From: Hyphochytrium catenoides
Lineage: Eukaryota; Protista; Hyphochytriomycota
Direction of reading: 5' to 3'
NCBI GenBank assembly: GCA_900088475.1
Contig: FLMG01003475.1
Location: 1 to 49,863 of the forward strand
DNA: 49,863 nt
Shown here one piece after another: positions 2,658-46,830 of this stretch (positions within the stretch are counted from its first letter, which is position 1; every line of letters starts with the position of its first letter). Made by a program: the position numbers and the translations under genes. The notes beneath the pieces are model-generated. The model searched no databases. It was not told where the DNA came from and saw only the letters and a list, made by a program, of their open reading frames with translations.

Positions 2658-3452
2658 ATGGGTAGTTCCAGCCTTCACTGTGACGTTCACCCATACTCCA
2701 GCACTCAAAGCCTATGCCCTCCTCCTTCTGGTCTGATAGTCATACGGGAAAGACCGATGATGACTGTTCAGGACCGGCAGGAAATGAAGAGCTCTAAAGG
2801 CTTGACAGCGTCGCAGGACGCCGCATGCAACAAGCCAACAAAAGGAAAGGGAGGAAGACAGCCATCGCTGGTTGATCAGCAACAAGAAAAGAGAAATCAT
2901 CAGGAGGAAAACGACCGACGAGTCCCGCCTCTTTGTCGCGGTCTGGCCATCACTTTTGGGACGAAGATCCCGCCAGAAGATTCCCTGGCTTCTCATCGTC
3001 ATCATTTCTCTTCTTCTCCTGGCACGACGATGCTACGACGACTAGGGGAAGAAGGAACAGCATTAATTGCTCAAAGCAATAACGACACGCAGCAAAGATC
3101 CTTCGCCACAGTGGGAGGGAAGAATCCTAACGCCGACCACAACCAGGCAGCAGTAAGCGCAACCGCTCAACCTTCATCATGTGACAACAGGTTAGACAGG
3201 CAAATAAAGGACGGACATGAGGGTGCCTCATCAGGTAGCGGCGGCTCAGGCAACGAGAAGGAAGTCTGCTCCAATCAGCATAGAAGAAGTGTCACACCTC
3301 TCCTCCATCCGCGTGTCTTTGCCCTTCGCAACTCTGAGCGAAGTCAGATCAACGACATTCCATTTCCTTCGTTATCATCGTCACATGTCATTTTCCATAG
3401 AAGAATAGAGCCCTTCATTCGAACTTCACGCTATCCATCTGCCTGCTGCTAG
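2658..3452 (+). CDS. Hypothetical low-complexity protein, member A of a local family with C-terminal P-x2-H-x-R-x2-A-x4-E-x-S-x3-DI-x2-P motif
   Basis: The open frame spans 2511-3452 with its first ATG at 2658. The protein is S/Q/G/T-rich. Motif PLLHPRVFALRNSERSQINDIPFP at 3297-3368 is shared with the ORFs at 9614-10366 and 23570-24115. Confidence 0.6.
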   Translation: MGSSSLHCDVHPYSSTQSLCPPPSGLIVIRERPMMTVQDRQEMKSSKGLTASQDAACNKPTKGKGGRQPSLVDQQQEKRNHQEENDRRVPPLCRGLAITFGTKIPPEDSLASHRHHFSSSPGTTMLRRLGEEGTALIAQSNNDTQQRSFATVGGKNPNADHNQAAVSATAQPSSCDNRLDRQIKDGHEGASSGSGGSGNEKEVCSNQHRRSVTPLLHPRVFALRNSERSQINDIPFPSLSSSHVIFHRRIEPFIRTSRYPSACC

Positions 3453-3921
3453 CTCACCGTCATCGTTCTTTGTACAGTTCTCTGTTTCCTTGAGATGTTC
3501 CTCAGGAGAAGGCCATAGCTATGAGCTAAGTGCTAATAATGTTAATAAGCAATCTGGTTATTTGGTTAGAGTCCGATGACATCTTCTCCTCTCTTTCCAT
3601 TTGTCTGTTCCATGCGTGTGATGATGCTTTATAAATGTCATGACGAGGAAGATAGGAGGAGGTTGTAGGTGCTGCCCTAGGTCTTCGTTGCCCGTCGTGG
3701 CTGCTGGATTTATATCATAATAGCTGATAGTACCTGGAGCTCGGCAGCGAAGAAAGGTCTGATAGCGCAGCAATCGAAGCAGGCGAATAACTCTAATAGC
3801 TGCTGACACTTTATTGACATGATAATATAAGAAGATAGGGACTTTCTCTTCTGTTAAAAGAGCTAAAGTAAGAGGACACATTAATTCTTTCTTCCCACCA
3901 GCAACCAAGACGAAAGGCCCA

Positions 3922-6031
3922 TTAGATGTCTAGAGGTTTGTTGATGCACGACATGACGTCCACGATGGCCTGCTCTGAGAGCACCATCTGGGTATGTTTG
4001 AAGGTGGGATACCAAAGCACCGTCATCGGCGCCTTCTTGCCTTTCCTCTCACAGCTGCACTTGAGATGACCGTCCTTCGCGCTATAGATAGCTCGGTCCT
4101 CGCTTATTCTGCGGGGCACTAACGGCTGTCCCTCGTCCTCCTCCTGGAGGTCTTGGTAATCCAGGGTGCAGGGACATCCATTGACTCCGCCCATCATGAG
4201 GTACTTGAAGATTGCCTGAGTTGGGGCAACTTCGTCCCTTCCGCCTAGGAAGACAATGCTATCGTGGTCATGCAGTTCATCTACAAAGACCACATTCTGA
4301 TACCACCAGAAGTGGCGCTTCAAGGTTCTTGCGATGTGCAGCTCTCTGGACGCAAAGTAGTAGTAGACGTGCTCCATGAAGCTCCTGGGGCTCCGATATT
4401 GGAAGTTATACGCCACATGAGGGAGAAAGAGGAGAAAGCAGACTGGATCTAGGAAGACCGTCCGTGCCACCACCTGAAGGAAAAATATTAGTCCCTTGGG
4501 CTAGCTGTCACACTTTTTGGCTTTTCTACTGTCTCCCTTGAACTCTTGAACTCTCTTCTTCCCCTGGTTCTCCACCGCCTTAAAGTGATCAACCACCAAG
4601 CAGTAGAGCGCCTCAGTATTCTCTCATGGCTTCATTCTCTAACCCCTGGAGGCGTCCTTTGAGGTTAAGCACATCTTGCTTTCTTTGTCTTCCTTTTGCC
4701 ACCATGCCCTATTCCCCTTGTAGAAAGCTCACAAGCCAAGAAGAGGGGCATAGATTCATCACAAGAAGCTATCCTACCTGAGGGATAACCTTGCTGACCC
4801 AGCCAACCACCACAGAGCCAAAGCTGTGGCCAACCACAATCACCTTCGAGAGCTGATGCTCCTTCAAGATCGCTTCCACAGCAGCAGCAGTGTCTGCCCT
4901 AGAAGGAACATCTTGCGCCCACATCATTGACGAGTCAATGAAGGGCAATTCTACCAGGATGCTGGTCCGTCCGTGACATAGATAGGAAAGGAAGTATAGA
5001 TAAGGGAAGAGGCCAATGCCCACGCCGTGAAAGAATAAGACGGGCATATGGCTAGGGTTGGCCTCACTGCGAATCCAATAGTTCAGTAGCTTCCCACGAT
5101 GGTAGGTGAACCCTCTGAGTCTCAGCACAATGCCAGTTACCTCATGTAGAATGGCCGTCCCAACATAAAGTAGCAATGGGCGATAATGAGAGCGCAACGG
5201 GTCCAAGGTAAGTCGAATGGGTACTGTCTCTCGATGTTCGCCCTGAGAGGAGTAGGATGGACGAGGATTGTGAGCGGCATGCTCCTCAGTGGTGCCAGGG
5301 TCTAACGCTATGGTCGTCCTCTTACCGGCACAAACTTCACTTTAAGTTCTTTCTCTGTCAGCTCCATCAGCTCGTCCAACTGTTGCTGATCCTCTGCTCC
5401 AAGTTGGTCAACGTCGGCCGCAAAGTAAGCCCAAGCATAGAACTTGCGAATATTGCCGAAGTGGATGCTATGATCTTTCCGGTCATGGAACCACCTGGAC
5501 TCAGGCGACAGTTAATAATAGAGCCATGAAGGCTCCAGGGAGGACGGCGATCGGGAAAAAGAGATGAGTAGGCGGGGAAGGAGGCCTCTAGCTGAGAGTG
5601 ATGGACAGAGTCCTCAGAAGAGGAAGTGTTCCGAGCACTTACAGTCTGAAGTACTCCCATGCATCCAGCTTCTGGCTCCTTAGCGTCTTCAAGACTTTCT
5701 TGTGCAACTCTAATGCAGGCATGCCATATGCCGGCGGAGTCGTTAGCTCTTGCCACTGGTTGAGACGCCTTCTATAGTAGAAGAAGTAGAAGAGCACTTC
5801 TATCACCAGCCACACAGTCACAGAGACCGCGATCTCCGCACTGACGTCATGGAGCCAGGCCGGACATGAGTTCCAACAGATTAGAGCGAGACTTGAGGCT
5901 ACCAACGTGTCTACGACGGTTGGCACTGCTGCTTCTTCAGCAAGAAGCAGGAGGGAGGGAAGCAGACTGACAAGCGTTGGAGTGAGAACAGTTAAGCTGA
6001 AGAGTGAGACAAGGACTTGAGAGGTTTTCAT
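3922..6031 (-). CDS. Membrane-anchored alpha/beta-fold hydrolase; 4 exons: 6031-5643, 5494-5326, 5242-4778, 4473-3922
   Basis: All three introns are GT..AG (donors GTAAGT, GTAAGA, GTAGGA) and phase-compatible. The joined protein has hydrophobic N-terminal segments, RLTLDP..HYRPL, oxyanion motif FFHGVGIG, nucleophile elbow VGHSFG, FLDPVCF, and candidate acid (GRDEV) and His (FKHT). It ends in TAA. Confidence 0.88.
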
Positions 6032-9000
6032 CGTGGAGTCCCGGCTCGCTACTAGCGGGTGTGCTTCGTTCTAACCCTTCTGCCTTCACGAAGGTGCTGC
6101 GCCTTCTGCTGGTCAAGACAACAGCGATGTCTCCCTAGGCCCTTGCCACGCCCTTCTGCTTTGTCTCTCCTTTCTATGACTCTTGACTACCTACGACGAC
6201 GAGAGCTATGATAGTAGAGTGCACGGGGTATTGGTAACACAAGCAAGCCAAATGTATTATGAGGCTAAGCTCCCTTACGAATCTCTGCCCCTTGCTTGGA
6301 GCGGGAAGAACGCTTGCAGGAAGAGAGGAGGACAGACAAGGAGGAGTCAAGGAGAAACGAGGACCGATCGCTGCGGCTAGGTGGTGCCTCTTCTTGGCTG
6401 AATCGAAGTTGATCGGTGCGTCGCCGCTTCTTCTTCTTCCCCTTCTTCCTGCTGCTGCGTGTTCTAACATCCTGGTCATCATCGCCAGTAGCTTGTTGGC
6501 AGCAGCAGCGCAACTCTCTTCACTGCTGCTATGTTCTTTGTTTGATGGCTCTCTGCTAGCTGGTCACTCGAGTGCGAACAATGATGTCATGGTCCACCCT
6601 CCTTGACAACTCTTATAAACACCATTTCTCTGTCTTTTTACGCTTGATGTCTCAAAAGAGACGGGCTGTCATGGTGCCTGCTAGCTTACTTCTACCACTC
6701 TCTCTTCTCCGTTCTTCTCGTCGCCTCGCTTCTTTAGATTCTCAATCAGGTGAGGTGGATACTTAGATAGCGGTGTACTCTGTCTGAGTGACGATCTTTC
6801 TGCGGTGACAGGTCATCAATGGCGCCTCCTGATCTCATCTCCCCGCCAATAGCAAGAGGAGGAGGATCTCTCGTTCAACACCAGGTCCAAGATCCATACA
6901 TTTGCCTCCTTTTTCCCTTACCCTCATAAGGACTAGAGCCAAACCTTTTCTGGTTTGCTTCTCTCTCTTTCATTGTTGTCCTGCTGCCTTCTCATTGAAA
7001 CGCTGACAGCTGTCAACATCTCAGCCAAATAGGTGGTGCAAGAGCTGGTGATAAGCTAGCTTCTAGCTAACGAAATAGATATGTGCTTCTCACCATCCTT
7101 GTGCAGGGAGGAGGGCAGACAGAGCGCTGGCCTCGTGTACAGCTGCTATAACTTTTGGCTGTCCCACCGCTGCTGATGGTGCGCGGGAGTTCTACCTACG
7201 ACGATGATGGTTGAGCTTGATAGTAATCCCAAAGCGAGTTCTTTGGACAGCTGGATAATGGACTAAGTCCTACCTAATAGTAGGGGAGACTACAGGATAC
7301 CCGCAGGAGGAGGAGGCAATCATCATTCTCCCTGAGACCGTAACGATGATGGCAATGATGAGACCACTGCCACCATAGATTGTCCTTGTCATGGGAAGGA
7401 GAAGGAGGAGATGGACGCAGGTGGAAGAGTAGTTCTACTAGGTCTGAAGATTGGCAGGCAGGCAGACAGGCAGGCAGGCAGGAAGCAAGGAACTCGAGTG
7501 CTCGTCGTAGTCCAAGGATGTAGGAAGAGGATGAGCTGCTGCTGCTTCTTGCTGTGTGTGCCGCATACGAGGAGGACTAACTATATCAATCCTATGCCAT
7601 ACCGTCGCTGTCATATCTTCTTTTAACGATGGCAAAGACAACAGAGTTGCTGCCTCCTCCATGATGATAATGCTAGTAAGACTTCTTGTTGAGAGCGCGT
7701 GTGTTGCTGCTATTGTGGTGGCTGCTCGTCCTTCGGAAAAAGTAAGAAGTGCTTCTCGCTGTTGCCGAAGATGAGATGAAATCCTGGTGAATGAGGGGCG
7801 GGGCGGGCGTGGATCGTCATCGTTATCAAACTACTCTTCTTCTTCTTCGTCGTCGAAGGAGGAGGTTCGATTGGCAAGTCGTTTATCAGCAGTACGATGG
7901 CGCACCGAATGGCCGCGGCCGTAGCTGCTGCTCCTTCTGTGAACTAATGATGAGCTGCTGTTGTTTGTTGGGATGAGATGGAGGCGGATCCTCAAAGCTT
8001 AGAGAGTACGTACGTCGAGGCGACGACGTGGGCGTGTGTCTCGTCAATTGTCTACTTTCACTTCTTTTGGCAGGGTCGACCCCAGCACTTTCCTTAGTAG
8101 GAAAACATGCTCTTCTGGCACTACCATCACCATCAAGAAAGGGATGGTTCCCGACCGCCGTCGACTTCCTCAAAAATAGGGTCATTCTCCTGATGAGCGC
8201 TGGTTGGTGCCAAACAAGACAATGGAGCGGAGCGCCCAAAAAGAAAAGCACCTTTGTCCTTCAGAGACGACATCTTCCTCACTGCTATTGCACCTGTGAT
8301 GACAGAGCTAGCTATATGAAGCAGCAGGCATCTAACGAAGTTATGGCCTTAGACTGTCTCTCTTTTCTCTTCCCTAGTCTCAAATCTCTGCGGCCGGTGC
8401 CATAGTCTCGCTCGATAATAGAAGTGCAGGGAACGCCTTCAAGAGGAGAAGAAGAAGCGGGGGAGAGATAAGAAGAGGAGAAGACTTGGGGAGAGGTGGG
8501 GGAAAAGAGAGAAGAGAATAATAGTGAGAGGAACAGAAAAAAGGAACAGTGGTGATAGCGTTTGTGAGCTCAGTCAGTGAGCAGCAAGACGAGGTCGCAT
8601 AATAGGGATTTAGTGCAGTTATGCTGGTAGAAGGCACTGTACGAGGGTAAACGGCTTCAGCAACAGCGAAGGAACACACCTGATCATGCTCACCCAACAA
8701 GAGACAGCCAAGATATATATAAAATGTCGTGATGCGAACTGACTGGACAGAGAGCCGGGGAGAGAGAGAGAGAGAGAGAGAGACAGAGAAGATATTTGTT
8801 TTTGTTTGTGTATGCGGGAAAAGGTTGAAGGGAACAGAGAAGACAGAAGGAAGGAGAGAGAGAAGAAAGACGTGGGCTAAAGGCGGCAGCTAGTTAGGCC
8901 ACGACGATAAGATCAGGAGGAAGGCTTACTCTTAGGCAAAAGAGTGTCCCTTCCGTAATAAACGATGACGGCCCAACCCTCCTCTGCCTACAAGTACTCC

Positions 9001-9613
9001 CTCCAGGACTGGAACGCCTATTACTTTGCAAGAGCCACCAAGGATCTCTGCAGGATACACTGTTCTTCTACTAGAAAGGGCCACGCAGATGGGAAGAGAC
9101 AATCAGAAAATAGCCCAAGCAGCAGGTGCTAAGATCCGCTGGCTAGCCACTCCTAAGGGCACAACCTCTAGCTAGTCAGTAGTCTCTACCGGCTAGCCAG
9201 TGGTGTCCTTCACAGGCAACCGAGAGTGTGACCACTCCTCACATAGCAGCAACAGCGAGTACGAGTGTTCACAGGCTCTAGTATTATCCTTATAATAGAG
9301 ACCTCGCAATGACAGGACAAATAACGATCGACAAAAGATAGTTAAATAGGCGCTATCGTCCTCTCTATGGCTGCAAGCAGGGCAGCACAGAGCCTAGACT
9401 GGCGTCAGCAACCGAACAGGCAGCCTAGGTTGAGATGCCAAGCATAGACAGTACCAGGAACAACGAGAGAGCGGCGGCAACAAAAAATAAAACAGGACAC
9501 AAGGATCGACGTCGCAGGGACAAAAATGAGAGGATCAACAAGCGATGTGAGTCCATTGGCAAAGCTGAGGCCAAGAATGCCGTGCGACATAATGCTTCGC
9601 TCTGGACGATGTT

Positions 9614-10366
9614 TTAAAGACTTGAGCCGATCGCAGTGACCCTTGTCGAGGTACAAGCTGCAGGATTTGGGAAAGCGATGTCTACAATCAGGCTAGGCTC
9701 ACGCTGGCGAAGGGCTAGGACTCTGCGGTGCACCAGAGGACTAACAAGCTCTCTTCTTCTTGGGCCACTGCAGTCTTGACCGTCTCTAGGCGGTGGGCTG
9801 TCTCTAGGCGGCTGTCCTCCTCCCGCTGCTATGGAGATATCCGACGGTGACGGTTGGGTCTCTATAGGGCCTCTGGTGGTAATATCATCTGCAACACGTG
9901 TCCTCCTTTCGATTGAGCAGTCGTCATCATGGGATGTGCAAGTTGGCAGTCGCTCCGGCTGAGGCATCGTCGTGGTTGTCCGCCTTATAACAAAAATCTT
10001 GCTACGCAAGGAGGATTGAGGCCTCTGTGAAAACGGCGAAGAAGACGAAGTACCAAAAGGGCTGCTGCTTCCTGAAGATTGGCAGGAAGTGCGTTGAGAC
10101 ATCTTGCTGGTGCTGCCATTTGAGTGGTCTTCTAGTGGAAACAGTGGATCCTCCTTGCTATGAGCGGCAACTTGTTTTAGCTCATACCGCGAGGTGAGCG
10201 GTACGCTTCCGCCCTCTTGTGAGCGGGAGGCTGGTCGAACCCTTACAACTGGTTCGTGGTGCGCAGTCCTGTCTGGGCCTTCCCTCCCGCTATCCCGAAA
10301 GCCCTTCGATTGAGGGACTAACTCGATGATGCTGGGCTGGTCGTCCTCCTTATGAATGAGACCCAT
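9614..10366 (-). CDS. Hypothetical low-complexity protein (250 aa), member B of the local motif family
   Basis: ATG-to-TAA ORF, S/P/R/T-rich, with motif PLVHRRVLALRQREPSLIVDIAFP at 9739-9668. Confidence 0.62.
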   Translation of the reverse strand: MGLIHKEDDQPSIIELVPQSKGFRDSGREGPDRTAHHEPVVRVRPASRSQEGGSVPLTSRYELKQVAAHSKEDPLFPLEDHSNGSTSKMSQRTSCQSSGSSSPFGTSSSSPFSQRPQSSLRSKIFVIRRTTTTMPQPERLPTCTSHDDDCSIERRTRVADDITTRGPIETQPSPSDISIAAGGGQPPRDSPPPRDGQDCSGPRRRELVSPLVHRRVLALRQREPSLIVDIAFPNPAACTSTRVTAIGSSL

Positions 10367-11606
10367 GATAATAGCTGCTGTTCAGGATGAGTGTCTGCCA
10401 GGTAGTGGTGCGGCGGTCAGTGCGACCCTAGAATAGTTAACATGAGAAGAGGAATCCCCACAATGACTGCTGAGGTATAGATTAAGGCTGTACGGTCTGA
10501 ATTCCTCTTGTGCTAGGCAGGGCAGCGGCGCGCTCGTGGTCAGTCAGTCCCTTTCTATCCAAGAAATGAAGACCAAGAAGAACTTTTTATGAGCCGTGGG
10601 CAGCAAGTGGCTCCATACCCAGGATTGTGAACGTAGACTTTAGTAGACAGACTATTATTCACCAACATGAAAGCGAGGGGTGAAAGCCTGTCAATCTTCT
10701 GCAGAGGGAACCACCCCAAACGACAAGAGATAGAAGGCCGGCAGTGACACAATAATAGGCCCAACCTATCATACACAGTCCTCCCAGTGTCCTATCCTCC
10801 CTTCTCTAACTATCGTGTCATCCTTATCCTTTCTTATTACCCTCATTGCCTCTGACTCTCCCTTCTGCTCTTCGCCCTCCTGCTGCTCTGCGGTTTCTCT
10901 CTCCTACATATGCCGTACGTGGGTGGTGAGAAGGCCCACCCTTCACCATAGGAAGGAGGAGGAACCTGTCCAGCTGCGCCCAAAGCGCTCGTTCTCTCGT
11001 GGCTCTACCATGCGCCCTTTTTTTCCTCTCTTTTCCTCCTCTCTTCTACCTCCTAGAGTCTCCTCCTCTTTTGGCAATTCCGGTCTCTTGTTAGTGCAGT
11101 GTCCATCTTCTTGTCCTTCTTCTGTGGACTGTACAAGGCGCATAATGAGCCTCCTGCTGGGATTGAGAGGAGGAGGCGAGGAAGACACATTCTATGAAGA
11201 ATGAATGGACTTCTGGTTGACACATTCTAGACCAAGGTGGCGTCAGCTGCTGGGGTGGCTGGAGACGGATGGGTGCTGCTAAGAGCTTCTTTGAGGGGAA
11301 GAGCCAGAAGAGAAGGAGGGAAACAGGAATGAGAAAGGAGGTAGGTCCTGCTTAACCAGTTCTTTAGAGACTGTTGAGATGTGGGACGCAAGAGGAAGGA
11401 AGGCTGTTAAAGTGCTGGGAACGGCGGCGGCGGAGAGAAGCGGATAGAGAGAGGAAAGGAGGGGTGCTTGCCCATCCAAGGTCGAAAGAGAACTTTAACG
11501 GTAGAGAGCAGAGACAGGAGGAGGAGAACTGTGGGACAAGCGGAAATGGGAGACCGCAGCACCGTTTCATGTCAAGCAAAACACTCTCTCCTCCCTTCTG
11601 GTGCTT

Positions 11607-11731
11607 GCTTCTCTCTCTTTTTCTCTCTCTCTTTCTCTCTCTCTCTTTCCCTTTCTTCTCTCTCTCTCTCTTCTCCCTCTCTCCCCCACGCTCCTTCCCC
11701 TGTCTTTCCCTCTCCTCTCCTTCCCACTCTT

Positions 11732-11786
<55 letters not shown>

Positions 11787-11791
11787 TCTCT
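11607..11791. repeat. Imperfect (CT)n/polypyrimidine microsatellite
   Basis: About 185 bp of almost pure C/T with long CT runs. It generates the spurious poly-SL and poly-ER ORFs here. Confidence 0.9.
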
Positions 11792-13974
11792 CGGGCCCTG
11801 GTCCAGCCCAGCACTGGCCCCTCATGTTCCCACAGCACTGTCAGGAAATTGGACGGAAGGAACGGCCAGAGAGGCCAATGTCCTGGAGAATAAAACACTG
11901 TCTCCTTGAGAGTGCCGAAAATAACAGGTGGCTCAACTTTCATGACTTCACGGTTTCACTCATCCCCTTCCGCCTTCCACACTCTTACCAGAAGTTATGT
12001 CATCCTCACGAAATTAACTCCACTTCCGCATCCTAGTCTTATTTAGTGGGAGGAAGGGCCAGGCAGGGCCGCCTTAGCCAGAACTTTACCAGGAACATCT
12101 TGGTCTCTTTTTTGGGTCTGTGGCGCAGCTGGGAAAGGCCTTAGCAGTAGGTCCTTAGATTTCCTGCTGTCTTGCATCGATCCCTGCGGCTGTGTGACCA
12201 AGAAGGAAGAAGCAAGGGACAGAGCCAGTAGCAGCTATGATGCCAGAGCCCTAGGAGTGCAAGAAGCGATCTCTCTTCGTCTAGTTGTCTCCTCTATCTG
12301 TTGTTGATGAGTTTGCTCAGTGACGAGGCAAAGGGCGGGCAAAGGGCGAGAAGGTGGAGGCCGCGTTTGTTTCTTTTTGCAAGCGTCTCCTTGAGGGGCA
12401 ACGAAGGCTGAAGGACGTGAGAGAACATGTAAGAACAGTAAGAGCGAAGGAGGCTGAAGATGGAGGCAGCGGAGGAAAAGAACAATGGACGATGCCGAAG
12501 GATAGAGCTAGCAGTAAGATCCGGTGCCGTGAGGGGCGACAGGACGGTAGAACCAGAAGAAGAAACTGTTGTCACATTACCTCTCTCAGGACCCAGGGTC
12601 GATCCAACCCGGCCTGTGGCATAAGAAAGGGCAAGATTTCCAATCGTTAACCGTCTCAAGAACGACGTTCGTGGTCCTCGCTGCTTTTGTTCTTTTCTGC
12701 TGCTGCTCTCGTTCGTCAGAGCTTGCCATAGGACTTGCCCCTGATAGCAGCACCATCCTTGTGACCAACCAGCCTAAGAAGGAGGAGCTGAGGAAAGCAA
12801 AAGGAATGTTATCTTATCCTTGTCCTTTCCCCGCACAACACCTTGTTCCCTACCGGTGGGTGCCCTCATCATCATCACGAACGGAAGGCGTCCTGGCCCG
12901 CAACTGCACACGGCGCCAAGCTGCTCTTCGTTTAGCAGTGCGGGGCAGTAATGGACTCGAAGCCCCTCAAACTCAGTCAACTCTTCCCCTGCTGACTAGA
13001 TAAAAACTTGAAGGACAAGTGCTTTGGGGCCCTTCTTGGTTCCATGTCCATCTTTAAAGAAGCACAGCCGCTTATCCTCCTTGCTTGCGGCTCCATCACC
13101 TACATCGTTTTTCTCTTCCCGTCGTATGGGTTGCTACTAGAAGAGTCGTCCATTGACTGTTCTTTGACGGGAACGATATCTGCATGATGGTGGCTCGCTT
13201 CCACCTCCTTGTCTTTTTCTCCTCAGACTGGCCGTCATCCCTTACCTCTTCGCTTATAATTAGCTGAGAAGAATGAGCAGAGCAAGAGCGACCATTAACT
13301 GAGAAAAGACCGCATTCATTATCGTTCGCAGCAGCAATAAGAAGGAAGAATTGAACGCGTTATCTTGCCAGTGCTTTCGTTGTTGCTGCCCAGGAAACCC
13401 TTGGTGGGCGTGCTTCTGTTGCCTCGGTTATAAATCTATAAGCTTCACCTCTCCTCCTCTTTCCTCACTGGCGGAGGGTACGCGGCCTATCGAAGGCAGG
13501 GGAAAGCCAGCTTCTACCATCTATTGTCATTATTGAACACATTGGATCCTCCTCCTTCCATGACGGACACATGAGGAGCGAGGCAACTAATAAGAAACAG
13601 GCACAGACGGTCAAGGGCTCGATTGACTGTGCAGCGAGGGTATATCATGGTCAAGAATTTTGAAGAACTATGAAAAGTAGTGCAGTGAGTCTCATCTCAT
13701 TTTGATTGAACTCCAAAGTAAAGAAGGCTGTGGATAAGGAGGGACAGAAGACCGATGTTAGTCATTCTCTTCCTGCTTTTGCTCTTGTCCTTCTGTCTAT
13801 AAAAGTTATTATCAATACTTTTCTGCTGCTGGGGCTTGCTGAGGGCAAGCCGTCATTATCTTGCAAGGCAATCTACCTGTCGATCAGGTCTTCCTTCTTT
13901 CCCCTTAACAAGAATGTTATCTCGTTTCTGTGTCGCATCGAGTGCGAGCCCTAACAGAGGAGGAACACTGCCCA

Positions 13975-14525
13975 CAAGACCGCTGCGGTTGGTCCCTTCA
14001 CACTGTGGAATGCCGATAACCTTGACTTCCCCAACAGACAACTAGGACCTCCTGTGCCAACCCATCCGCAGCTGCAAGACGCCCTAGCGGACATTGAGTA
14101 GCTTCCCATTCTTGTTGGTCTGACTTGTAACTATCGCTGTAAGAAGACCAGCAGCCAGGAAGCAGTGCCCGTCGAAGTGGGCTTGCTTTGGCTGTTTGCT
14201 GCGTAGGGATAACAACGTTGTTCTGCGATGATGGCTCCCTCGACTCTAGTGGTCAGGAATCACAAGGAGGAAACGTGCAGCAGCGGTTGCTCAGTTCAAA
14301 GCATCTCTTCAGATTCATGGCTTCATTATTATTAGGGGCACAACCGAGAAACCTAGGAAATGGATCCAAGTTCTCACGGCACATCTGATCGGCCATCAAT
14401 TCTTCAGTGCTTTGTACAAAGCTCCTCTTCTCTGTACGACTGCTGGAAGTCTTCGTCCGTCCATCCTTCGCTGGAATGATTGACCGATTATTTGCCGTCT
14501 CATGGATGGAAGAAGGCGTGGAAAG
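13975..14525 (+). repeat. Degenerate repeat family, copy 1 (segments Y-Z)
   Basis: Aligns by eye to 15520-15830 plus 16190-16360. Shared blocks include gccctagcg, gtaactatcgctgta, ttctgcgatgat, ctcgactc.agtggtcagga, cacggcacatct and ctgtacgactgctggaa. Left boundary is approximate. Confidence 0.8.
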
Positions 14526-16360: not shown

Positions 16361-17450
16361 ATCCAGGGAGGGATATTAGGTCCTGGCGCGGGTGTAGGAT
16401 GGGGCTGACCTCCTACGTCACTTTCAGATTTCCTCGGTCAGCCTCAGCCTCTGCCGCCTGCTCAAATCTAGACACAGCGGCAACGAATAGAAGAAGCAAA
16501 GCTGACTAGACCTATGCGCTGCCGCAGAACAGTCTTCGCTTGAACCAGCCAGGCGGTACGGAAAGGTCCCAGCAGGCTAGTAATATCAGACGCCGTGTGA
16601 CCCCCACCCAGAGGCTTATACATCTTTTCCGCTCTTGTCACGGCATCCGGGTGAGCAGAAGGAAAGGGGTGAAAAGGAGGAGGGAGCCCTATAAATATGA
16701 TGTGATTGTGGTGGTTCGGGTGGCGCGTTGATGTTGAGAGCTCCTCACTCTTTGCCATTCGGGAGCTGTTGATGCCGCTGGATTCACAAGAGGGGGCATT
16801 ATCATCTCTCTTAGAGCTGGCTCCGCTGCGTATGGAGGTAGCTAAGAGCTGAAGAAGGAAGAACAATGGTTTGCCCCGATACCTACTTCTACTCTCTATG
16901 CCAAGTCTGTAGTAAATATACATACACACTTGCTAGTTATATGTTATTTATTTAATCGGTGCCTCACGCCACCGCGTGTCCGCGACATAATGCCTGCTAG
17001 AGGTACTTTGAGCTTCTCTAAAAAGATTATTGGCAGTCAGGGGAGGAGATAGATAAAGGGGTCCTCTTGCTCTTTGCAACGCCAAGAAAAGCTTTTATGA
17101 TAGCTTGTTGCCTGCCCAAGTGTCCGAAGAGCCTGGCTTAGCTAATCGATCCCTAGCAATGAAGTTCATGGACTAACACTGAATAATATTTTCGAGACGA
17201 GAGGACGCCACAGCCTTCGTCAAGGCGTTTTGCCGGGTTCGACAACAACTCTACTTATGTTAGCCCTCGATGGCCAAGGTGCCAATGTGGTTGATGGTGG
17301 GGAGGATATCCCGGCTGTTGTTGATCATCTACACTGACCTTCTTTCTACCTTCATCATCGAAAGCACCATAAAGGAGGTTGTTACCTCAGCATTGAGAAA
17401 CGATGAGATGCTATTAGTATTTATTTCTTGACAAACAGGCTGTTGATGCT

Positions 17451-19970
17451 TTACATTGGAACTAGTGGTTGAAACCCTCTCTGAAGCCCGCATATCTCAA
17501 GGTGTCTTGATGATGATGTGCTGCCTGGCCTCACCGTAATTCCCTCTTCCAATGCCTCATCATATCCATTCATCGTCGTCGTTCCGTCCTTGGTCTTCCA
17601 ATCTTCTCCAATGAAAGTAAGCCGAAGGAAGCGGGTGATGACAAAAGGTTCAATGTCTTCGGCAGCATGTGCTCTCAGAGTACTGTCACTGTCACTACTG
17701 CTGCTGCTTCTTTCTTCTTGAAAATTGAGCCTCGTTACTGCCACCAAGTTGTTATCCAAGCCACTTTCCGATTCTTCTGCTGTCGTGAGGTTGGTGTAAG
17801 TGGTGGCCCAATAATAGTTAGAAGGGTCTAGGTCTCTGTACGCCATTCCATCCAGAGAGACCGAGACAGTCACCTGAGACGTAAGTTCTCTCGGAAGGCG
17901 ATGCTTGATCACCACGCTGCTCAATTTACCAATAGAAATGAAGTCATAACCAATGAAGTTTCCCAGTTTGAGAGGGTAGAATGACTTCCAGCAGCAGTCA
18001 CCTCCACCGACAGCACAGGGAATAGGAAAGCGTTTAAAATGCCCGATTTGTTGGTTGAATAGCTCTCTTGCTACCGGTTCATAGTTAGCCCTGGTGGGGT
18101 CATACTGGGGCGTGGAGATATCTACCTGGGCAATGTTTGTTTCGAAGCGACAGCTACCATCGGGGCAGGTGCTCCACCATCGTTGCGGCCAGTTCTTGTT
18201 AAGCGGTTGAGCAACACTTAAGCTGAGAATCACATCAGCTGCATTCACCTTGTTGCTGGCAGTCAAGTTCTCAAACTCGCTGCTGGGATCATCTGTGTCC
18301 TGAGTAGTACGGTTAGGAGTTCTCTGCTCTGCAAGACTAAACGTCGTCGCATTCTCGGCATTATTATAGATGGAGCCGTTGGAAGTGAGAGGAAGTCTCG
18401 AGCCCTCTCCTCGAGACGCTATCGTTGCCTTTCTTGCGTCTTGGTATTGCTTCATAAGTGAATCAAAAACGCTTCTAGCGGCAAAGTTCTTAACTGCACC
18501 TATTTCATTTTGGACGTTGTTTCCTGAGCGATAAATAGCCACCGCACGCTCCTCTTCACCACCCAGCTCCTGCAGCTGCACGGTGTAAATGACTGGGAAC
18601 TGGTTGAGCATGATGGTAAACATAGCGTCCATATGCAACTCAATGTTCGGGCCACTATTGTACCCAGTGGCGATAATTCGAAAACGATCCAGATGCGCTT
18701 TGCTTACAAAGCAACCGCAGCCTATCCAAGCGAACCCTGAGTGAAGGTTTATGGTATGGTTGGAGAAGGACCATTTGTAGTCATCAGCCGCCGTTGGCGC
18801 GTCAGTAGCAACATGCACTTGTGACGGTGATGCAGCATACCCGAGGAACAATCCCCAGAAGTAACCTCGAGTATCCCAATCATCATCCTGGAGGAAGACA
18901 GTCGGGTTAGAGGCCATGGCCGCTGCCAAGTACCGTCCTCGTGTCCCGAAGTTATACCGAGAGTTAACGATCACGATCTCCTTTGAAGCTGCCGTGAGGG
19001 AGACGTTGCGAAAGTATTCCTTTGTCAGCGTTACGTTAGGGTTGTTGTTCCATATGATAACCTCCGATACAACGGAGTAATCTAGGAGGTAGCTAACGAT
19101 CGTTTTAATATTCTCCGTCCTCTTCCAATGAATGAGTACAGCCGTAGTCTGAAACTTCGTCTTCAGGGCTCGATTATGAATGATGGCTTGACCAGTTTCC
19201 TCTTTAGTGAAGAAGGCTTTAGCGCTTTCTCGAGAGCTGTTCCTTGTAAGGGAAGCTGGCTCACTAACGTAGTCATCATCTTCTTCCTCAACCAAGAAAG
19301 GAGCACCGAGCGCTTCAGATAGGCTGATCTTCTCATAAGCCATGGAGTAGACTTGCACTTGACCGCTGCCGACACTGACAAGTGTGCCAGATGGGTCAGT
19401 TGGCAAGGGAGGTGTGCTTGTGCTTTGGGCGTTGATTTTGCTAGGACTAACCATGCTAGGAGAAAGAGTACTTGGTGCTATTGTTGCCGCGAAAAGTGCT
19501 GGTCGAGAAGTTGACTCGCTGGCCGGAGATCCTGCATCTTTTAATGGCAGGGTTCTCTCTGACGAATTCTGTGCGAAGCCCTGTGACGACGAAGATAAAT
19601 TGCCTGTTTTTGAGGTTGTTCCGCCTACTCCCCTTAGTAAGGCAGCAGGTGGAGTCGTCGTACGTTGGGGCTGTGAAGCTCTTGTAGGAGCAGCCAGGGA
19701 AGCAGCCGGGTCTCGAGGAGAGACCACTGGATCGTTACCACTAGGATAAGAGTCGTTTCCGTCCTCGCCACTGCTGGCCAACTTGTTGAGCATCCGAGAA
19801 TGGATGACGTTACCATTGTCTGCATCACGTGACGTGAGCGCACGATTGCAGCTTAGTCCCTGAAAGTGCACAAGCAGTAGGCCTGTGCCTGCGAGAAGAA
19901 AGAGGATTCGTAGGCGACTGGTCGCTAGCCGATGATGAAAGGGTTGACATGGCCTACTCCAGCGAGTCAT
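17451..19970 (-). CDS. Type II membrane GT-A glycosyltransferase (GT64/EXTL-like fold) with probable C-terminal beta-sandwich carbohydrate-binding-like domain
   Basis: Intronless 839-aa ORF. It has an N-terminal TM anchor (ILFLLAGTGLLLVHF) and an S/T/P-rich stem, then TAVLIHWKR..EVIIWNNNP..RY.AA..FLQDDDW (DxD) and HSGFAWIGCGCF. The C-terminal region has CWKS..FIGYDF..VSVSLDG..RFLRL. Confidence 0.8.
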   Translation of the reverse strand: MTRWSRPCQPFHHRLATSRLRILFLLAGTGLLLVHFQGLSCNRALTSRDADNGNVIHSRMLNKLASSGEDGNDSYPSGNDPVVSPRDPAASLAAPTRASQPQRTTTPPAALLRGVGGTTSKTGNLSSSSQGFAQNSSERTLPLKDAGSPASESTSRPALFAATIAPSTLSPSMVSPSKINAQSTSTPPLPTDPSGTLVSVGSGQVQVYSMAYEKISLSEALGAPFLVEEEDDDYVSEPASLTRNSSRESAKAFFTKEETGQAIIHNRALKTKFQTTAVLIHWKRTENIKTIVSYLLDYSVVSEVIIWNNNPNVTLTKEYFRNVSLTAASKEIVIVNSRYNFGTRGRYLAAAMASNPTVFLQDDDWDTRGYFWGLFLGYAASPSQVHVATDAPTAADDYKWSFSNHTINLHSGFAWIGCGCFVSKAHLDRFRIIATGYNSGPNIELHMDAMFTIMLNQFPVIYTVQLQELGGEEERAVAIYRSGNNVQNEIGAVKNFAARSVFDSLMKQYQDARKATIASRGEGSRLPLTSNGSIYNNAENATTFSLAEQRTPNRTTQDTDDPSSEFENLTASNKVNAADVILSLSVAQPLNKNWPQRWWSTCPDGSCRFETNIAQVDISTPQYDPTRANYEPVARELFNQQIGHFKRFPIPCAVGGGDCCWKSFYPLKLGNFIGYDFISIGKLSSVVIKHRLPRELTSQVTVSVSLDGMAYRDLDPSNYYWATTYTNLTTAEESESGLDNNLVAVTRLNFQEERSSSSSDSDSTLRAHAAEDIEPFVITRFLRLTFIGEDWKTKDGTTTMNGYDEALEEGITVRPGSTSSSRHLEICGLQRGFQPLVPM

Positions 19971-21526
19971 GCTGCTGACGATGAACTACTACGTAGCAGC
20001 GGTGATGCGCTCGTCGTGCTTTCGCTACTACACTACTACTACCCTTCGTTCGCGTTGTCTTAGCGTCGTCAGAGTTCTTCCGTCGTTCATCTAACACCTA
20101 TAATAAAAGTGGCGAAGTGTGTGAAGCAGTGAGTGCCTTTGCCATAATGATGAGCTGCTACCACGTGGAGGAGAGCACCCGAGTGATAGACGAAGGGTCT
20201 TCCGGCGATTGTAAGATGAGACCGATGTAGCTCGTATTCATTCGCCCCCACACGCTGGGCGGTACTCCTCTCTCTCTTTCTTTCTCTATGTGGTCCCAGT
20301 AACGCCCGCGCTCCGCGCTCATAATATTGCCAAAACCCTTGACCTTAGACAGCTCCTTCTTCTCCTCTCCTTTCGCCTTTCCTCTTACTGGGGTGACCCG
20401 TTTGCCTCACCTATTATTAAACATTAGTCATCCGTGTACTAAAGAAGTAGGAAGGAGGAACATTGGTCGAGCTCCCGCTAAGAGTTGGTAATAATAACGC
20501 CTGGCCCTTCTCCCTGAACTGTGTCACCAGGAGTTTGGTCGAGTACTAGAGTGCAAAGGAAATGTGCTGCGAGAAGCCCTAAGATGGACCGGAGCCGTTG
20601 GGGATATCTTTGGTTCTGGTGGATTTCACTTCCCCATCGTGATAAACAGCAAGAATAACGGCTGTTGAAAATGCTCCATCATCACACGTTTTGCCCTCAA
20701 AACCGCAGTTACACAAATTTCAGTACTCCTTCAGGAGCTGTTGCAACGGAAGCAGCATTGTTAGCTTTTCTCTATAAATCCTTGGATTCATCATTCCTGC
20801 TGTTTGTGCTCCTTGCCCCTCTTTCTACGACTGCAGAATGTTCATAGAGCTGCTGTTCATAGCATGTCGCCACTGTGTGGGATGAAGAAAGGCGCATGCC
20901 ATCAAGTCCAAGGTAGGGCCTAACTCTTATGCTCAACATAAAGACGGCAATGCTTGCTCTGGATGTCTAGTTTCTCCCTTGCACTTGTTTGACCAGCAGC
21001 AGCAGAGGGAAAGCCTATATACCTGGCTGGGCTGTTATTTCGCAGCAGCAGTGAGGAGGGGAGAGAAGAGGACGCAAAACACTGACTTCGCGCTCTTCTA
21101 CTACTCCCGTTGATGATGGTGGCATTGAAGATGATGCCTTGGCTAGACGAGTGATGAGGAATAATGACTGTTCAGCGCAGCAGGCGCCGGTTCTTGTTGG
21201 AGGAGGGGGGATGACTTGACTCCGGAATAATAGGGAAGACATCGTTGTTTGTCATCTTGCTTATTATTACTTACGTCCCGGCGGTAGGCGCGTCATGGCT
21301 CTCAACTTTCTCCACCAGCTGACTTCACCGCAGAAAAGATAAAAAGAGAAAGCAATGAAGCAGTAGTAGAAGAAGCTGCATTTGCCAAACACTAAATTCC
21401 TGCTTTCTTTGTTGCCACCAATTGTAGCCAGCTTCAGTCGGCTTTCAGAAAGGTAGTTGCAGACAACCATCGTCCACGGGACGCAGCCCAGAATCATCTA
21501 GGATACATTCTAGTAGTTGTTGAAAT

Positions 21527-23040
21527 TGTCTCGCTTGGGGCGTCGTCACTTTCGTGCAGAAGCGAGGTCACATGTTCTGGTGCAAGAGACGACGCTAAGA
21601 TGTCTATTCTGCAACATTTAACAGGCATTATTGGCGTCGAGTGAGGTGAGCACTCGTGGTTGGGGACTGACGGTATCAGGGTCCTGGCCAGGTTCTATGG
21701 TGGGCGTGGACTAAGCGGTAGAAGGACGGACAATCCGTAAAGTGGGACGTGAGGTTTTCCTGTCTGAGGATGGGACTGACCAACAGAGGAATGGAGAAGG
21801 AGAGTCAAAGAAGCAGATACCACCCAGGGCTGCTGCAGACATAATGCCTTCATTCCGCCATCAACAGGGAAAGCGCCGTCAGCGACAAGAGGCGGACTGT
21901 TGTGGAGCACATACCTTTCCATAGTTCAGTATGACGTCATACTAGTACTCATATGAAGGAAAAAAGAAGGAAACGTGGAAGAAGAACTGAAGACAGAAAA
22001 ACTAGGAAAACGTAGAGAAAGATGAAGGTCTGAAGAGACAAGAGAAGAGAAAGTTTGGACTCTTCAACTCTTCCGCTAATAGAACTATCAGCAGTGAAGA
22101 AGGAGAATATATAGCTGATTGTTCTCCTGAGTCAACAGAAGATGGGAAGAGGTGAGAGGAGGAGTAGCAAACAAGTTGATCTGCATGTCCTGTGGGAAAG
22201 AGGCCTAAGGGCCCTAACTGTCGAGGATGGAATACGTCTCAAAGATCTCTATAATCGATGTAGGCTTCTCATCAAGCGTGGAGATGTCGTCACGACTAAA
22301 GATTGAACAAAAGACTCTGCTGCCGCTTTCCCTGTGTGGCTTCTCCCTTTACTCTATTGATATACCCGAGTACTAGGCAGCCCAGTAACATGATGTAACC
22401 AACAATAGTACTGACCCCTTGTTGCTCACCATCGTCAGACAGCCGCTTTCATGAATCTCAGCTGCTGCTGGATAGATAGCTCGAGCGCATTGTACCAAGA
22501 CACTGTGTTCACTTCCGTTCTCAACCAGTCTTCTTTGCAGTAGTGGGAACAGATACCATGCCTTCATCACACGCTTCTTCCTTTTCGGAAAAAGGAACTA
22601 GAGATTGACAGCGTTACTTTGAGCTCGTTGGCAGCACGACGACGGCTTATTCTTCTAAAAATAGCGTAAGTTGAATTTCTTAGTGTTTTGTCTGGCCACT
22701 CAATAGCATTGTTCGCCCTCGTCAGATGAACGGAGAAGAGAATGAGCGATATTAGCTGGTGGAGCAGATCAAGTTCTTGATTGTGCTAGCTCTTGGAGGA
22801 GAAGCAGTGCTCTTCTCGCAGCACAGTCCTGTAACAACTTGCTAGGCCCAAGTTCACGTGATATTTAACGTTTTGCATAGCACCATCAGCTCTCATCGTC
22901 TCATTCACTACTCTTTTCGCTGGCTTATTATAGCCACACCACTTAGCTGACCCAGGTACAAGTTAGCAGCAGCTGCAGCAGCTGCAGCAGCACTTTCGCC
23001 CTCACGAGTGCTTGAGATATGCTAACCCAGAATAAGCGAT
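21527..23040 (+). repeat. Degenerate repeat family, copy 3 (segments X-Y, with ~900 bp insertion at ~21965-22858)
   Basis: Blocks shared with copy 2 include tgtctcgcttggg, agcgaggtcacat, ttattggcgtcgagtgaggtgag, tgcagacataat, ttccgccatcaac, cctttccatagttca, ccatcagctct and gtgcttgagatat. Confidence 0.85.
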
Positions 23041-23105
23041 GATAGTAGTAGAAGAGGTAGACGTCACAATGAGCCAACAAAAGATATATTGAGGAACATG
23101 AATAA

Positions 23106-23133
23106 TTAGGGTTAGGGTTAGGGTTAGGGTTAG
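23106..23133 (+). repeat. Interstitial telomere-like repeat (TTAGGG)4TTAG
   Basis: Four perfect TTAGGG units plus TTAG. Confidence 0.85.
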
Positions 23134-23569
23134 CCAACAGCAGTTGGCTGAACCTCACGCTACGAAGAAGAAGATCCTTATCTGCGATGGTCACTGAGGG
23201 CGATCGCCGACCATACATCTGCAGTGTGGCGCAGTAGCAGCAAGAAGAAGGTCCAATTCCTGACGGTGGTCGGTCGCGAGGTTGATTGAGACGAAGGTTA
23301 TGGTCTGGATGGTGGTGTTGTCACCTTCACAAACTCGACCACGGACTGTAGTCCATCTCGCCTCCTGCCAATGGCACTCAAGGCCGTGAGGTAGGTGGGG
23401 AGGTCCAGGGGTACGTGTATTGGTGTTCGCTTCAAAATTGCTTGCACATGGTGGCATCGTCCTCTCTTAGCTGAAGGCGCATCTTCTTGCTTGCACTGCT
23501 TCTTACTTCAGGTTGGCTACTGCTCATCCTTTGACCGGTATGAGGTTATCATGCATGCTGGCCTTCCAG

Positions 23570-24115
23570 TCAATAGCCATCATCGTCTGCTGCCGCAAGC
23601 TCATCCCCTAAGTCATTCTTCCTTTCGCCTCCTACAGTCAGAAGGATGTTGGGATAGGGGATATCTACCATGAAGGACTGCTCTTCGTCCAAAATCGCTG
23701 CAATCCGCGGGTGAACATATGGTGGAAGTGGCGATGTGGGGCGAGAGGGAGGAACCGAAGTGGTGTGCGAAGTGCCCCTTTGGCGGCTGCTTACTGGAAG
23801 TTCCCCTGCCTCTTCTTCCGCCTCCGGTTCAGGGCTTGCGTCCTCATGACTAGTATCAGGACTGCTAGCATTGCTCCTGCTCATACTTGATCTTGCCTCT
23901 TTCTCTTCCGTGTCTCCATCACAATCTTCCCCTACAGTGTCCTCGTTGTTGCTGTCAACGAGTTGTCTTCCACCGCCGCTAATTGTTGACTGCCATCCAA
24001 TATTCTTGTCTATGTCACAGTCCGCATCCACTGAAGCCAAAGCAGCAGTCATAGTGGTGGCAGCAACACGGTTCCTTAGGAAAAGAGGACGAAAAGCCTT
24101 GTCATCACAGTTCAT
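23570..24115 (-). CDS. Hypothetical acidic low-complexity protein, member C of the local motif family (possibly 5'-truncated or pseudogenising)
   Basis: 181-aa ORF with motif PYVHPRIAAILDEEQSFMVDIPYP at 23722-23651. An upstream in-frame ATG at 24250 is separated from it by a single TAG at 24178-24176. Confidence 0.55.
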   Translation of the reverse strand: MNCDDKAFRPLFLRNRVAATTMTAALASVDADCDIDKNIGWQSTISGGGRQLVDSNNEDTVGEDCDGDTEEKEARSSMSRSNASSPDTSHEDASPEPEAEEEAGELPVSSRQRGTSHTTSVPPSRPTSPLPPYVHPRIAAILDEEQSFMVDIPYPNILLTVGGERKNDLGDELAAADDDGY

Positions 24116-26543
24116 GGCCGTGATGATCTTGAGAGGAACGGTGTCTCCTCCCCCCGTTACCCGGGAATTCTCCTGCTAACACGAACGGTGATTGACGATG
24201 AGCGAAATCTTGACGAGATGGTGAGCGGCAGGAGGACAAACGTAGTTCATCCTAGAAGTGCATGAATCTACCGCCAACCGACCAGAAGTAGCATCTATCC
24301 GCGACCGACCACCTACTCGTAGCATCGGCAACTCATCCGACTGGACCAAATGCGGCTCACCCGCTGACTTCGTACTAAGTTGATGATGCTACCTACTGGG
24401 TTTCACCACCACGGTTCAGTCAAGAAAGGAAGGACAGCATCGCCTGCAGACACCAGTGACACCCTAGGTCTTCCACTGATGACAGAAAGGTATGCCTGTC
24501 TTAGAGGAGGCATAGAGCAGTACAAGCTTCATCGTTTTGATTGTTTTATACAAGGGTTATAAAAGAAGAGCATGAAAGGCAAAGTCAAGCGGGCAGTCAT
24601 TCTTCAGAGCAGAAGAACTACCAAGGAAATTGCTGGGAAGATTGTCCGACCGCTTTTGCGCTTGCTGAGGAAAGACCAAAACACTCTTTGACAGTTGAGC
24701 ACATAAGGTCCTACCCTTCATAGAGGAGAAGAAGTATTTCAAGGCTGCTCCTGCTGGGAGTTCAGACCCCCAAGAGATTAAAGTGATGGATGGGTGGAAG
24801 AGGAAGAGACGAAGAGAGGCATATTTTGCTGGTGAGCGAATGACATTTGTTTCTTGTCACTTCCTCACACAGGGCCACCCTACCCTATCGACTCCCACTC
24901 TCTGCTGCACTTTCCTCTTTCCTGCACGCCCTTCACAAGCTCTGAGGCAGGCGTCGAGGCGGAGAGAAAAGGATGTCAAGAAGAATCCAAGGACTCCTTT
25001 GCTCCAACATCAGCTGGTGCCTACTGATCTTTGCACTTCTTACCTCCTCCTCTTCTTCTTGCTGACATCTGTCTCCCTGTTCCATCCGCCGGCAGTCAGA
25101 GAGTTGCACCTCCCTCCTGATGTTGGGCGGCTGACCAGCAAGAGACAACTGGCCCAGGGTAGGGAGGAGCCTGAGCGTTAGCCTTGAGAGCCTGAGAGGG
25201 TAGGAAAGGCATCATCTGAAAAGATCCAGTGGGCCAAGGACCTGATGCCGACGGAGTGAGGGACACACACCGTCTTCCTAGCTCTGGCTCTCTGGCCTAG
25301 ATCCCCTCACTCTGTCTACCTCCACAGTACATCCCGTCTCATTCTGTCTCTCATTCATTTGCATATATTACGGGAAAGTCTATCTAGGGAGTGTCTGTCT
25401 CCCTTTCTACGTCATCTAGTGCAGGTTTTGGCCGAGGACCAGCTGCTCGTAATGCTGACATAAGATTCGTCCTGATAACGCCGCTATATTGGGAAGGCGA
25501 TAGAGCTAGCTGGAGGTTTATACTATCTTACAGCGTTAGAAAGGTTTTTCTAACCTTACCATGGGATTTCTCTCATTCCTCGGTCCCGCTGTCCTATTCT
25601 TTTCGCTTATTATTTGCGGGAGCGAGTTGGTGAGATGGAGGGCTATAGGGTGGCCTTCTTATCACATCTTTTCATATCTACTTCCGTCTTTTCAGGTCTT
25701 TTAGTGCTACTCTGGCTCTCCCGAGAGGCCGTCTGATGGTGGCTTTCTCTTCTGCTGCCGCTGTCAGTGCAGCTCTTAGTGCCCATGCTGCTGGTCCTAG
25801 CGCAGTCTCTGCCGCCTTATGCTCTTTGCTCAGCGGCTGACCGGACAGTTTCCCACCAACTGTCAGCTCTGATGATCATCATCCTTCATTCTTCATAGCT
25901 AGGGAGACTGAAGACAAGTTCGAGGGAAGAAGGACATTCACTGCTAGAGGAAAAGTTGTTGGGGCCATGATGGGCATGCAAGCCTTGCTTGACTCCTCAC
26001 CCTTCTTCTTCCCTTTCAAAGGACGTCCAACAAGGGCCCTAATAGGAGTTAGTTGAGTATCGCCTCTCGTTGCTTCAGAAGCTTGTCATAGTTGAGCAGG
26101 GGGTGGATGATGTTGGCGTCTTTCTACTGGGTGTGCGGAGAATGCTTCTCCTTTGGTTCCTACATATTATTGCTGCTGCTGCTGACGCTTTTTCTTGGTG
26201 CATAGCAGTAGTCAACCAGTAGTTACCTTTCATGGTGCCAAGGACTCTGACGCCGTCGATGGAGTGAGTGGCCATCTTTGTCTCCCATTTCACCGATTGT
26301 GCTCGTATCACTATAAACCCCAAAATAAAAGAAGCAGGACCAGATATTTTCTGGGAGATAATATTTGGTTAAGCTGCCCGACAGCGTCTAAGCTTTGTCC
26401 GAGGATGAAGCTCTTGATGACACTCATATCAGGCTCACGACTAGGAGAACAAACAAAAATCTGCTTTAAACTGAGAACATAAGAGCGGTGAAGACAACAG
26501 CAGCAACAAAGATGGGCTAGCAAAGGGCTTAGGAAGACCGACA

Positions 26544-42007: not shown

Positions 42008-42190
42008 CAGAGAGAGAGAGAGTGATACAAGAGAGTGAGAGAGAGAGAGACAGACAGAGACAGAGAGAGAGGGGGTGATAGAAGAGAGGGAGAGAGAATT
42101 AGAGATAGAGACAGAGACAGAGCGAGACAGAAAGAAAGAAAGAGAGAGACAGAGAGAGACAGAAAGAAAGAGAGAGACAGAGCGAGACAG

Positions 42191-42248
<58 letters not shown>

Positions 42249-46796: not shown

Positions 46797-46830
<34 letters not shown>

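Follow-up and report, generated by a model that had tools for sequence, protein, structure and literature searches.

A conserved motif near the C terminus links three small intronless genes, A, B and C, in a 49,863-nucleotide contig of Hyphochytrium catenoides (FLMG01003475.1; hereafter the window, contig C198 of the 61-Mb eukaryotic assembly of 4759 contigs that we searched). We propose that the products of these genes and of four paralogues elsewhere in the genome are probably single-exon, disordered proteins whose one conserved element is a bipartite C-terminal module for binding the phosphatase PP2A-B55. The initial annotation of the window had described the motif as unrecognised, which does not hold for its N-terminal half: this half matches, in register, both the PP2A-B55 docking element of p107 and the B55-specific short helical motif (SHelM). 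The novelty that it claimed is retained for the other half, S-x3-D-I-P-[FY]-P, and for the family itself, neither of which has a known counterpart.

A protein family sharing one C-terminal motif

The three 24-residue motifs originally reported (A, 3297-3368, forward strand; B, 9739-9668, reverse strand; C, 23722-23651, reverse strand) are identical to our translations of the same coordinates. As the initial annotation had stated, the motif ends 17-27 residues before the stop codon, with 27, 17 and 26 residues after its last Pro in A, B and C, respectively. Nine of its 24 positions are invariant among the three proteins (P1, H4, R6, A9, E14, S16, D20, I21 and P24), and these residues are encoded by different codons (Arg by CGT, AGA and CGG; Ser by AGT, AGC and TCC; the last Pro by CCT, CCA and CCC). 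All-against-all BLASTP bore out that the protein bodies are otherwise unalignable: all pairwise matches below E 0.001 include the motif, and identity in the flanks is low. A search for DNA repeats found none connecting the three loci, and the genome contains one copy of each gene. The differing codons favour selection on the protein, as first suggested, over DNA repeat similarity. Table 1 gives the coordinates of the genes and motifs. The open frame of gene A starts at 2472, and its entry in the open reading frame (ORF) listing begins at TTG 2511; the ATG of gene B lies 5 codons downstream of the preceding stop.

Table 1. Genes and putative B55-type motifs of the three family members in the window
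Feature	Position	Strand	Description
Gene A	2658-3452	+	264-aa coding sequence from first ATG, S/R/P-rich; open frame 327 codons
Motif A	3285-3374 (30-aa frame)	+	T-P-L-L-H-P-R-V-F-A-L-R, putative p107-type B55 docking element; then E-R-S-Q-I-N-D-I-P-F-P
Gene B	9614-10366	-	250-aa S/P/R-rich ORF; open frame 255 codons
Motif B	9662-9751	-	S-P-L-V-H-R-R-V-L-A-L-R, then Q-R-E-P-S-L-I-V-D-I-A-F-P
Gene C	23570-24115	-	181-aa acidic ORF; open frame 201 codons
Motif C	23645-23734	-	S-P-L-P-P-Y-V-H-P-R-I-A-A-I-L-D-E-E, then Q-S-F-M-V-D-I-P-Y-P

The multi-gene family is real, but the three members first counted understate it. A profile built from the three-motif alignment recovered four further ORFs elsewhere in the genome (per-genome E 1.4e-5 to 2e-3), giving a family of at least seven, as this search scored only the best first-look candidates; a second round with all seven sequences found no convincing eighth member in the genome. 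The added members (D-G; loci L004-L007) all start with ATG and encode 170-285 aa, within open frames of 172-293 codons. All four are single copy and have the same layout as A-C, with the motif ending 19-39 residues before the stop. Across the family the open frames run from 172 to 327 codons, and in five of the seven members the first ATG lies no more than 10 codons from the upstream stop, as would be expected of complete single-exon genes and not of terminal exons. Three members are found within 21 kb of each other inside the window, a clustering that points to old local duplication. With seven sequences aligned, only H, R, D and I remain invariant, the Arg being encoded by five different codons, and the consensus becomes h-h-H-[PR]-R-[VI]-x-[AET]-[LI]-[RIL]-x-x-E-x-[ST]-x-x-x-D-I-[PAS]-x-P.

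Proteins A-C and their paralogues are small and likely to be disordered. Neither the seven full-length proteins nor their last 65-87 residues gave a meaningful Pfam match, and none matched Endosulfine at E up to 10. A single-sequence AlphaFold2 model of protein B has a mean predicted local distance difference test score (pLDDT) of 41, with values <50 over 232 of its 250 residues; its sole helix, at residues 211-217, falls within the motif, and no second helix is predicted. This model is consistent with a disordered protein that bears a helical docking element, and it is weak evidence because it was computed without an alignment. Protein A alone among the members ends in ...S-A-C-C (window 3438-3449), which we take to resemble a Rab-type double-Cys geranylgeranylation signal.

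Searches of protein collections returned no relatives of these proteins. A word-index protein search with B gave no match, and an exact look-up of nine ORFs in a collection of 15 billion proteins found none of them present. The 30-column motif profile had 0 matches at E up to 0.001 among 1.84 billion representative proteins, a search in which weak relatives could escape because a profile of this length has low power there. At the level of sequence, this is a new protein family that uses a known docking code and adds to it a new conserved extension.

Docking code, predicted B55 complex and competing readings

Until 2021-2025 it was an open question how PP2A-B55 selects its partners. In the B55 literature cited here, no B55-specific short helical motif other than that of p107/FAM122A is known, and its validated instances are all animal. 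The motif common to p107 and FAM122A reads R-[LV]-x-x-[IV]-[KR]-x-[ED] (PMC12350174); an earlier consensus for the short linear motif was p[ST]-P-x(4,10)-[RK]-V-x-x-[VI]-R (PMC11233601). The B55 docking element of p107 was defined as SPxxHxRVxxV, and the substitutions H619A, R621A, V622A and V625A abolish binding (PMC8575462). In a cryo-EM study of p107 on B55, R621 forms a salt bridge with D197, V622 and V625 fill pockets P2 and P1, L617 occupies pocket P7 and H619 pocket P8, P620 provides a kink and R626 binds the MEELT loop (PMC12350174). FAM122A makes its contacts through R-L-x-x-I-K-x-E-E, in which E91 and E92 are important (PMC10765524).

A blind comparison of a seven-sequence profile of the family with all PDB chain sequences ranked a 78-aa human p107 fragment first (from the PP2A:B55-p107 structure 9c6b; E 0.15), aligning p107 PMSPLMHPRVKEVR with motif positions 2-15. 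The first 12 residues of the motif ([ST]-P-L-x-H-P-R-V-x-x-L-R) are in register with the human p107 element SPLMHPRVKEVR. This element of p107 (RBL1; residues 615-628) likewise lies in a disordered region. Counted from the Arg (position 0), it shares with the family the [ST]-P, a Leu (-4), a His (-2), a Pro (-1), a Val or Ile (+1) and a further aliphatic residue (+4); the Arg (+5) and the acidic residue (+7/+8) recur in part of the family (Table 2). The residues that p107 needs for binding, H619, R621, V622 and V625, correspond to the best-kept positions of the family (H, R, [VI] and [LI]). In A and B, the placement of [ST]-P agrees with the published short linear motif, and among window open frames of at least 100 codons these two alone contain the strict pattern H-x-[RK]-[VIL]-x-x-[VIL]-[RK]. 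The first half of the motif matches the known PP2A-B55 docking code of the p107/FAM122A type.

Table 2. Correspondence of motif positions with p107 and FAM122A, numbered from the invariant Arg
Position	Known binder	Family members
-6/-5	p107 S615-P616	[ST]-P in A and B
-4	p107 L617	Hydrophobic in 6/7; residues L/L/Y/L/A/L/Y
-2	p107 H619	His in 7/7
-1	p107 P620	Pro in 5/7; Arg in B and F
0	p107 R621	Arg in 7/7
+1	p107 V622	V or I in 7/7
+4	p107 V625	L or I in 7/7; Leu differs conservatively from the published I/V
+5	p107 R626	Arg in 4/7 (A, B, F, G); L in C, I in D and E
+7	p107 D628 / FAM122A E91	Glu in 4/7 (C, D, E, G)
+8	FAM122A E92	Glu in 6/7 (A, B, C, D, E, G)

The same organism has a B55 whose binding pockets are intact. 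We located B55 genes with a 41-aa probe that served only this purpose and then verified the loci against PDB sequences; the genome search yielded two loci and no further B55 gene. One, on contig C3634 (L015:954-2246), is an intronless, divergent paralogue of 430 aa that matches human B55-alpha (3dw8_B) with E 5.6e-67 and has at most 39% identity to any database protein. The other, on contig C963 (L016), is a multi-exon and more conserved gene, which we translated exon by exon and whose introns are filled with (GA)n/(CT)n tracts. Both genes conserve, in human numbering, Y178, D197, L198, M222, L225, V228, I284 and S287. The position of D340 is occupied by Q in the intronless paralogue and by E in the multi-exon gene, and that of H179 by I in the multi-exon gene.

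We predicted the complex of the intronless B55 paralogue (430 aa) with the 30-aa motif of A in three runs, alongside three controls. The interaction prediction score from aligned errors (ipSAE) was 0.80, 0.80 and 0.79 for the complex and 0.00-0.03 for the controls, the best control reaching 0.03. The runs agreed in at least 74% of contacts, with partner pLDDT of at least 61. Confident contacts on B55 fell at residues 191-192, 210-211, 235-241, 243, 260, 292-297, 300, 350 and 356; subtracting 13 gives human numbering, in which they correspond to Y178/H179, D197/L198, M222-V228, S247, F280-I284, S287, Y337 and F343. These residues form pockets P1-P4, P7 and P8. The peptide made its contacts through L6, H8, R10, V11, L14 and R15. 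The lowest-error pairs were R10 with D210, V11 and L14 with L238/V241, and H8 with S260/I297/S300. In the model, H8 and L6 touch the equivalents of P8 and P7, and R10 touches D210, the counterpart of human D197. The predicted contacts reproduce the p107 binding mode residue for residue. The prediction does not tell which of the two B55 genes encodes the partner.

Several observations weigh against PP2A-B55 as the partner. The p107 match in the PDB is not significant on its own (14.7 bits over 14 residues), and single-sequence PDB searches with A and with B returned nothing. Members C, D and E have no K or R at +5, and F has a one-residue insertion and is without an acidic residue at +7/+8. Although conserved, the S-x3-D-I-P-[FY]-P half of the motif finds no equivalent in either p107 or FAM122A, and the model gave it no confident contacts to B55. 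The complex score may itself be recall of the p107 and FAM122A complexes, because such complexes have already been solved; the prediction would then show likeness, not binding. The ipSAE mark that the complex passed was reached by 51 of 78 solved complexes and by 2 of 108 mismatched pairs; most of its calibration set consists of folded microbial pairs, and it has no benchmark for peptides. Orthologues were not found elsewhere, so that purifying selection is seen among the seven paralogues only, and the genes are predicted from DNA alone.

Some of these points would also fit a motif that docks on a different, possibly lineage-specific partner, its likeness to B55 binders being coincidental or that of a generic amphipathic helix. 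The p107 sequence match is short and statistically weak, memory of solved complexes can drive a prediction, and the second half, as conserved as the first, is left unexplained by B55. We nevertheless consider a different partner unlikely. The in-register match covers seven or eight positions of defined function, among them the rare His-Pro-Arg core; our rough estimate from residue frequencies is that such a pattern would arise by chance at about 1e-10 per position. Moreover, the family-invariant positions are those that p107 mutagenesis shows to matter, and the complex controls stayed close to zero.

A partner of another kind is suggested by the F/L-x-x-D-I part of the motif, which could be a TOR signalling (TOS)-like motif that docks on Raptor/TORC1 and would make these proteins TORC1 substrates or inhibitors like 4E-BP or PRAS40. 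The TOS motif follows the pattern F-x-h-[DE]-h. Members C (F-M-V-D-I), E (F-C-C-D-I) and G (F-L-A-D-I) fit this pattern, and the motif lies near the C terminus, as in 4E-BP1. However, the critical Phe is present in only three of the seven members, the others having L, L, Q and V at that position (the Asp is invariant), and the most conserved residues, H and R, fall outside this part. Because of the missing Phe we rejected the TORC1 reading, which we regard as very improbable. Pfam models for PRAS40 (PF15798) and S40/DUF584 (PF04520) found neither in the genome, in searches that had no positive control.

Least probable of all is that the ORFs are chance frames, decaying pseudogenes or relics of mobile elements, as might be supposed from their low-complexity composition and from the lack of both expression records and homologues in the protein databases searched, given that seven open frames of this length keep the motif at a constant distance from the stop, have ATGs near the upstream stop, encode the conserved residues by different codons and are single-copy genes outside DNA repeats. 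A DNA repeat or mobile-element origin was rejected on two grounds, the missing link by repeats and the single-copy state of A, B and C.

Relation to known B55 binders and proposed mode of action

With PP2A-B55 preferred as the partner, the family can be set beside the known B55 binders. Its predicted contacts fall on the same B55 pockets as those of p107. However, p107 is a large pocket protein with the motif in its spacer, whereas the family carries the motif at the C terminus of proteins of 170-285 aa that have no folded domain; the extension S-x3-D-I-P-[FY]-P is not described for p107 in the papers cited. Members A-G are not retinoblastoma pocket proteins, as they have no Pfam domain and so neither RB_A nor RB_B. 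The genome does contain a retinoblastoma-family gene (loci L018-L020; contig C3982:26267-27229, reverse strand), in which RB_A is split over three exons (best E 2.6e-19); H-x-R-V-x-x-V-R was not seen in the stretch of C3982 examined around these loci.

FAM122A (PABIR1; helix 84-RLHQIKQEE-92; PDB 8so0), an endogenous inhibitor of PP2A-B55, is, like the family members, a small disordered protein; it binds PP2A-B55 through R-h-x-x-h-[KR]-x-E-E. It shares the E-E pair at +7/+8 with members C, D, E and G, and paralogues exist in both cases. We detected no sequence homology between the two, and the PDB profile search, read up to E 10, contained no chain of FAM122A. In FAM122A the motif lies centrally, with a long inhibition helix after it that covers the PP2Ac active site, whereas in the family a C-terminal motif is followed by a short Pro-rich extension, with no second helix predicted. 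On these three counts (motif position, PDB profile search and second helix) the members do not group with FAM122A/PABIR.

Endosulfine/ARPP19 (PF04667) proteins are also small and disordered, and are known PP2A-B55 inhibitors that contact both B55 and PP2Ac. They differ in the orientation of the helix and in an FDSGDY core phosphorylated by Greatwall, and their Pfam model does not match the family. Elsewhere in the genome, L017:1501-1602 (contig C2940) has a weak Endosulfine match, with E 0.1 and below the cut-off, whose core, FYFTDSADIALAK, could belong to a divergent exon of an FDSGDY-type B55 inhibitor or have arisen by chance. Further helical B55 binders are the SERTA-domain proteins, IER2/5, Zds1, RBM7 and PME-1; the pockets are conserved from yeast to human, and such helices may arise de novo (PMC11446282). 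These proteins have little sequence in common with each other or with the family, which is of the p107/FAM122A SHelM type.

The family most likely represents new lineage-specific regulators or substrates of PP2A-B55. In the mechanism that we propose, the first half of the motif ([ST]P-L-x-H-[PR]-R-[VI]-x-x-[LI]-[R/I/L]-x-(E)-E) would act as a p107/FAM122A-type short helical motif. Its Leu and His would seat in the wall pockets of B55, its Arg would form a salt bridge with the conserved Asp (human D197), its two aliphatic residues would fill the hydrophobic pockets of the platform, and the basic residue that follows would bind the MEELT loop. The second half, S/T-x3-D-I-P-[FY]-P, would point toward the catalytic subunit of PP2A. 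In p107 the helix spans residues 621-632, and residues 633-635 abut PP2Ac (PMC12350174); carried over to the family in the same register, this would bring the invariant Asp-Ile (+14/+15), and the Pro-[FY]-Pro behind it, to the catalytic subunit or close to it. Ser/Thr-rich tails come directly after the second half, and if the members are substrates, this tail past the motif could be the part that is dephosphorylated.

The initial annotation had proposed docking on a common partner by inhibitor or adaptor peptides, an idea that fits the B55 motif match and the predicted complex, the binding itself being a prediction. Because the module is the only part conserved among the paralogues, the function of the family is, in our view, PP2A-B55 binding itself. 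For the same reason, we favour competitive inhibitors, or adaptors like FAM122A, over ordinary substrates. It is conceivable, if on balance doubtful, that the family forms a third, independently evolved class of endogenous PP2A-B55 inhibitor beside endosulfine/ARPP19 and FAM122A, in which the helix clamps B55, Asp-Ile-Pro-[Phe/Tyr]-Pro plugs the groove or active site of PP2Ac, and the seven paralogues differ in targeting or timing. If this were so, the extended p107 code SPLxHPRVxxhR would be older, or more readily reinvented, than its animal instances suggest. Found in a eukaryote that lacks close relatives in the databases searched, the family offers an independent evolutionary test of the key positions, in which His (-2), Arg (0) and both aliphatic residues (+1 and +4) have been kept. 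Its motifs provide natural sequence variants with which binding can be studied, the family is a candidate for a new class of phosphatase regulator, and its S-x3-D-I-P-[FY]-P half is a testable lead for contact with the catalytic subunit.

Other features of the window

Three further ORFs on the reverse strand stand out. An intronless ORF of 839 aa (17451-19970) has no Pfam or PDB sequence match of its own; its few distant homologues are 30-32% identical over about a quarter of the length, and two of them carry Glyco_transf_64 (PF09258). It is flanked by short dispersed repeats (14957-15068/21546-21650 and 15379-15448/21906-21975). A 472-aa ORF (39861-41279) encodes a Bud23/WBSCR22-type 18S rRNA (guanine-N7) methyltransferase with large extra segments, as its match to the solved chains covers residues 159-263 only. 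A 446-aa ORF (32260-33600) has a borderline PAS_8 match (22.2 bits, cut-off 21.8) and a sub-threshold HLH match (16.2 bits), and could be bHLH-PAS-like or owe both matches to chance. Long imperfect (GA)n/(CT)n tracts occur at 42005-42320, 11610-11800 and 46780-46990 and give rise to spurious SLSL/ERER open frames on both strands. At 28430-28628, a unit of 99-100 nt is present in two tandem copies that are 88% identical.

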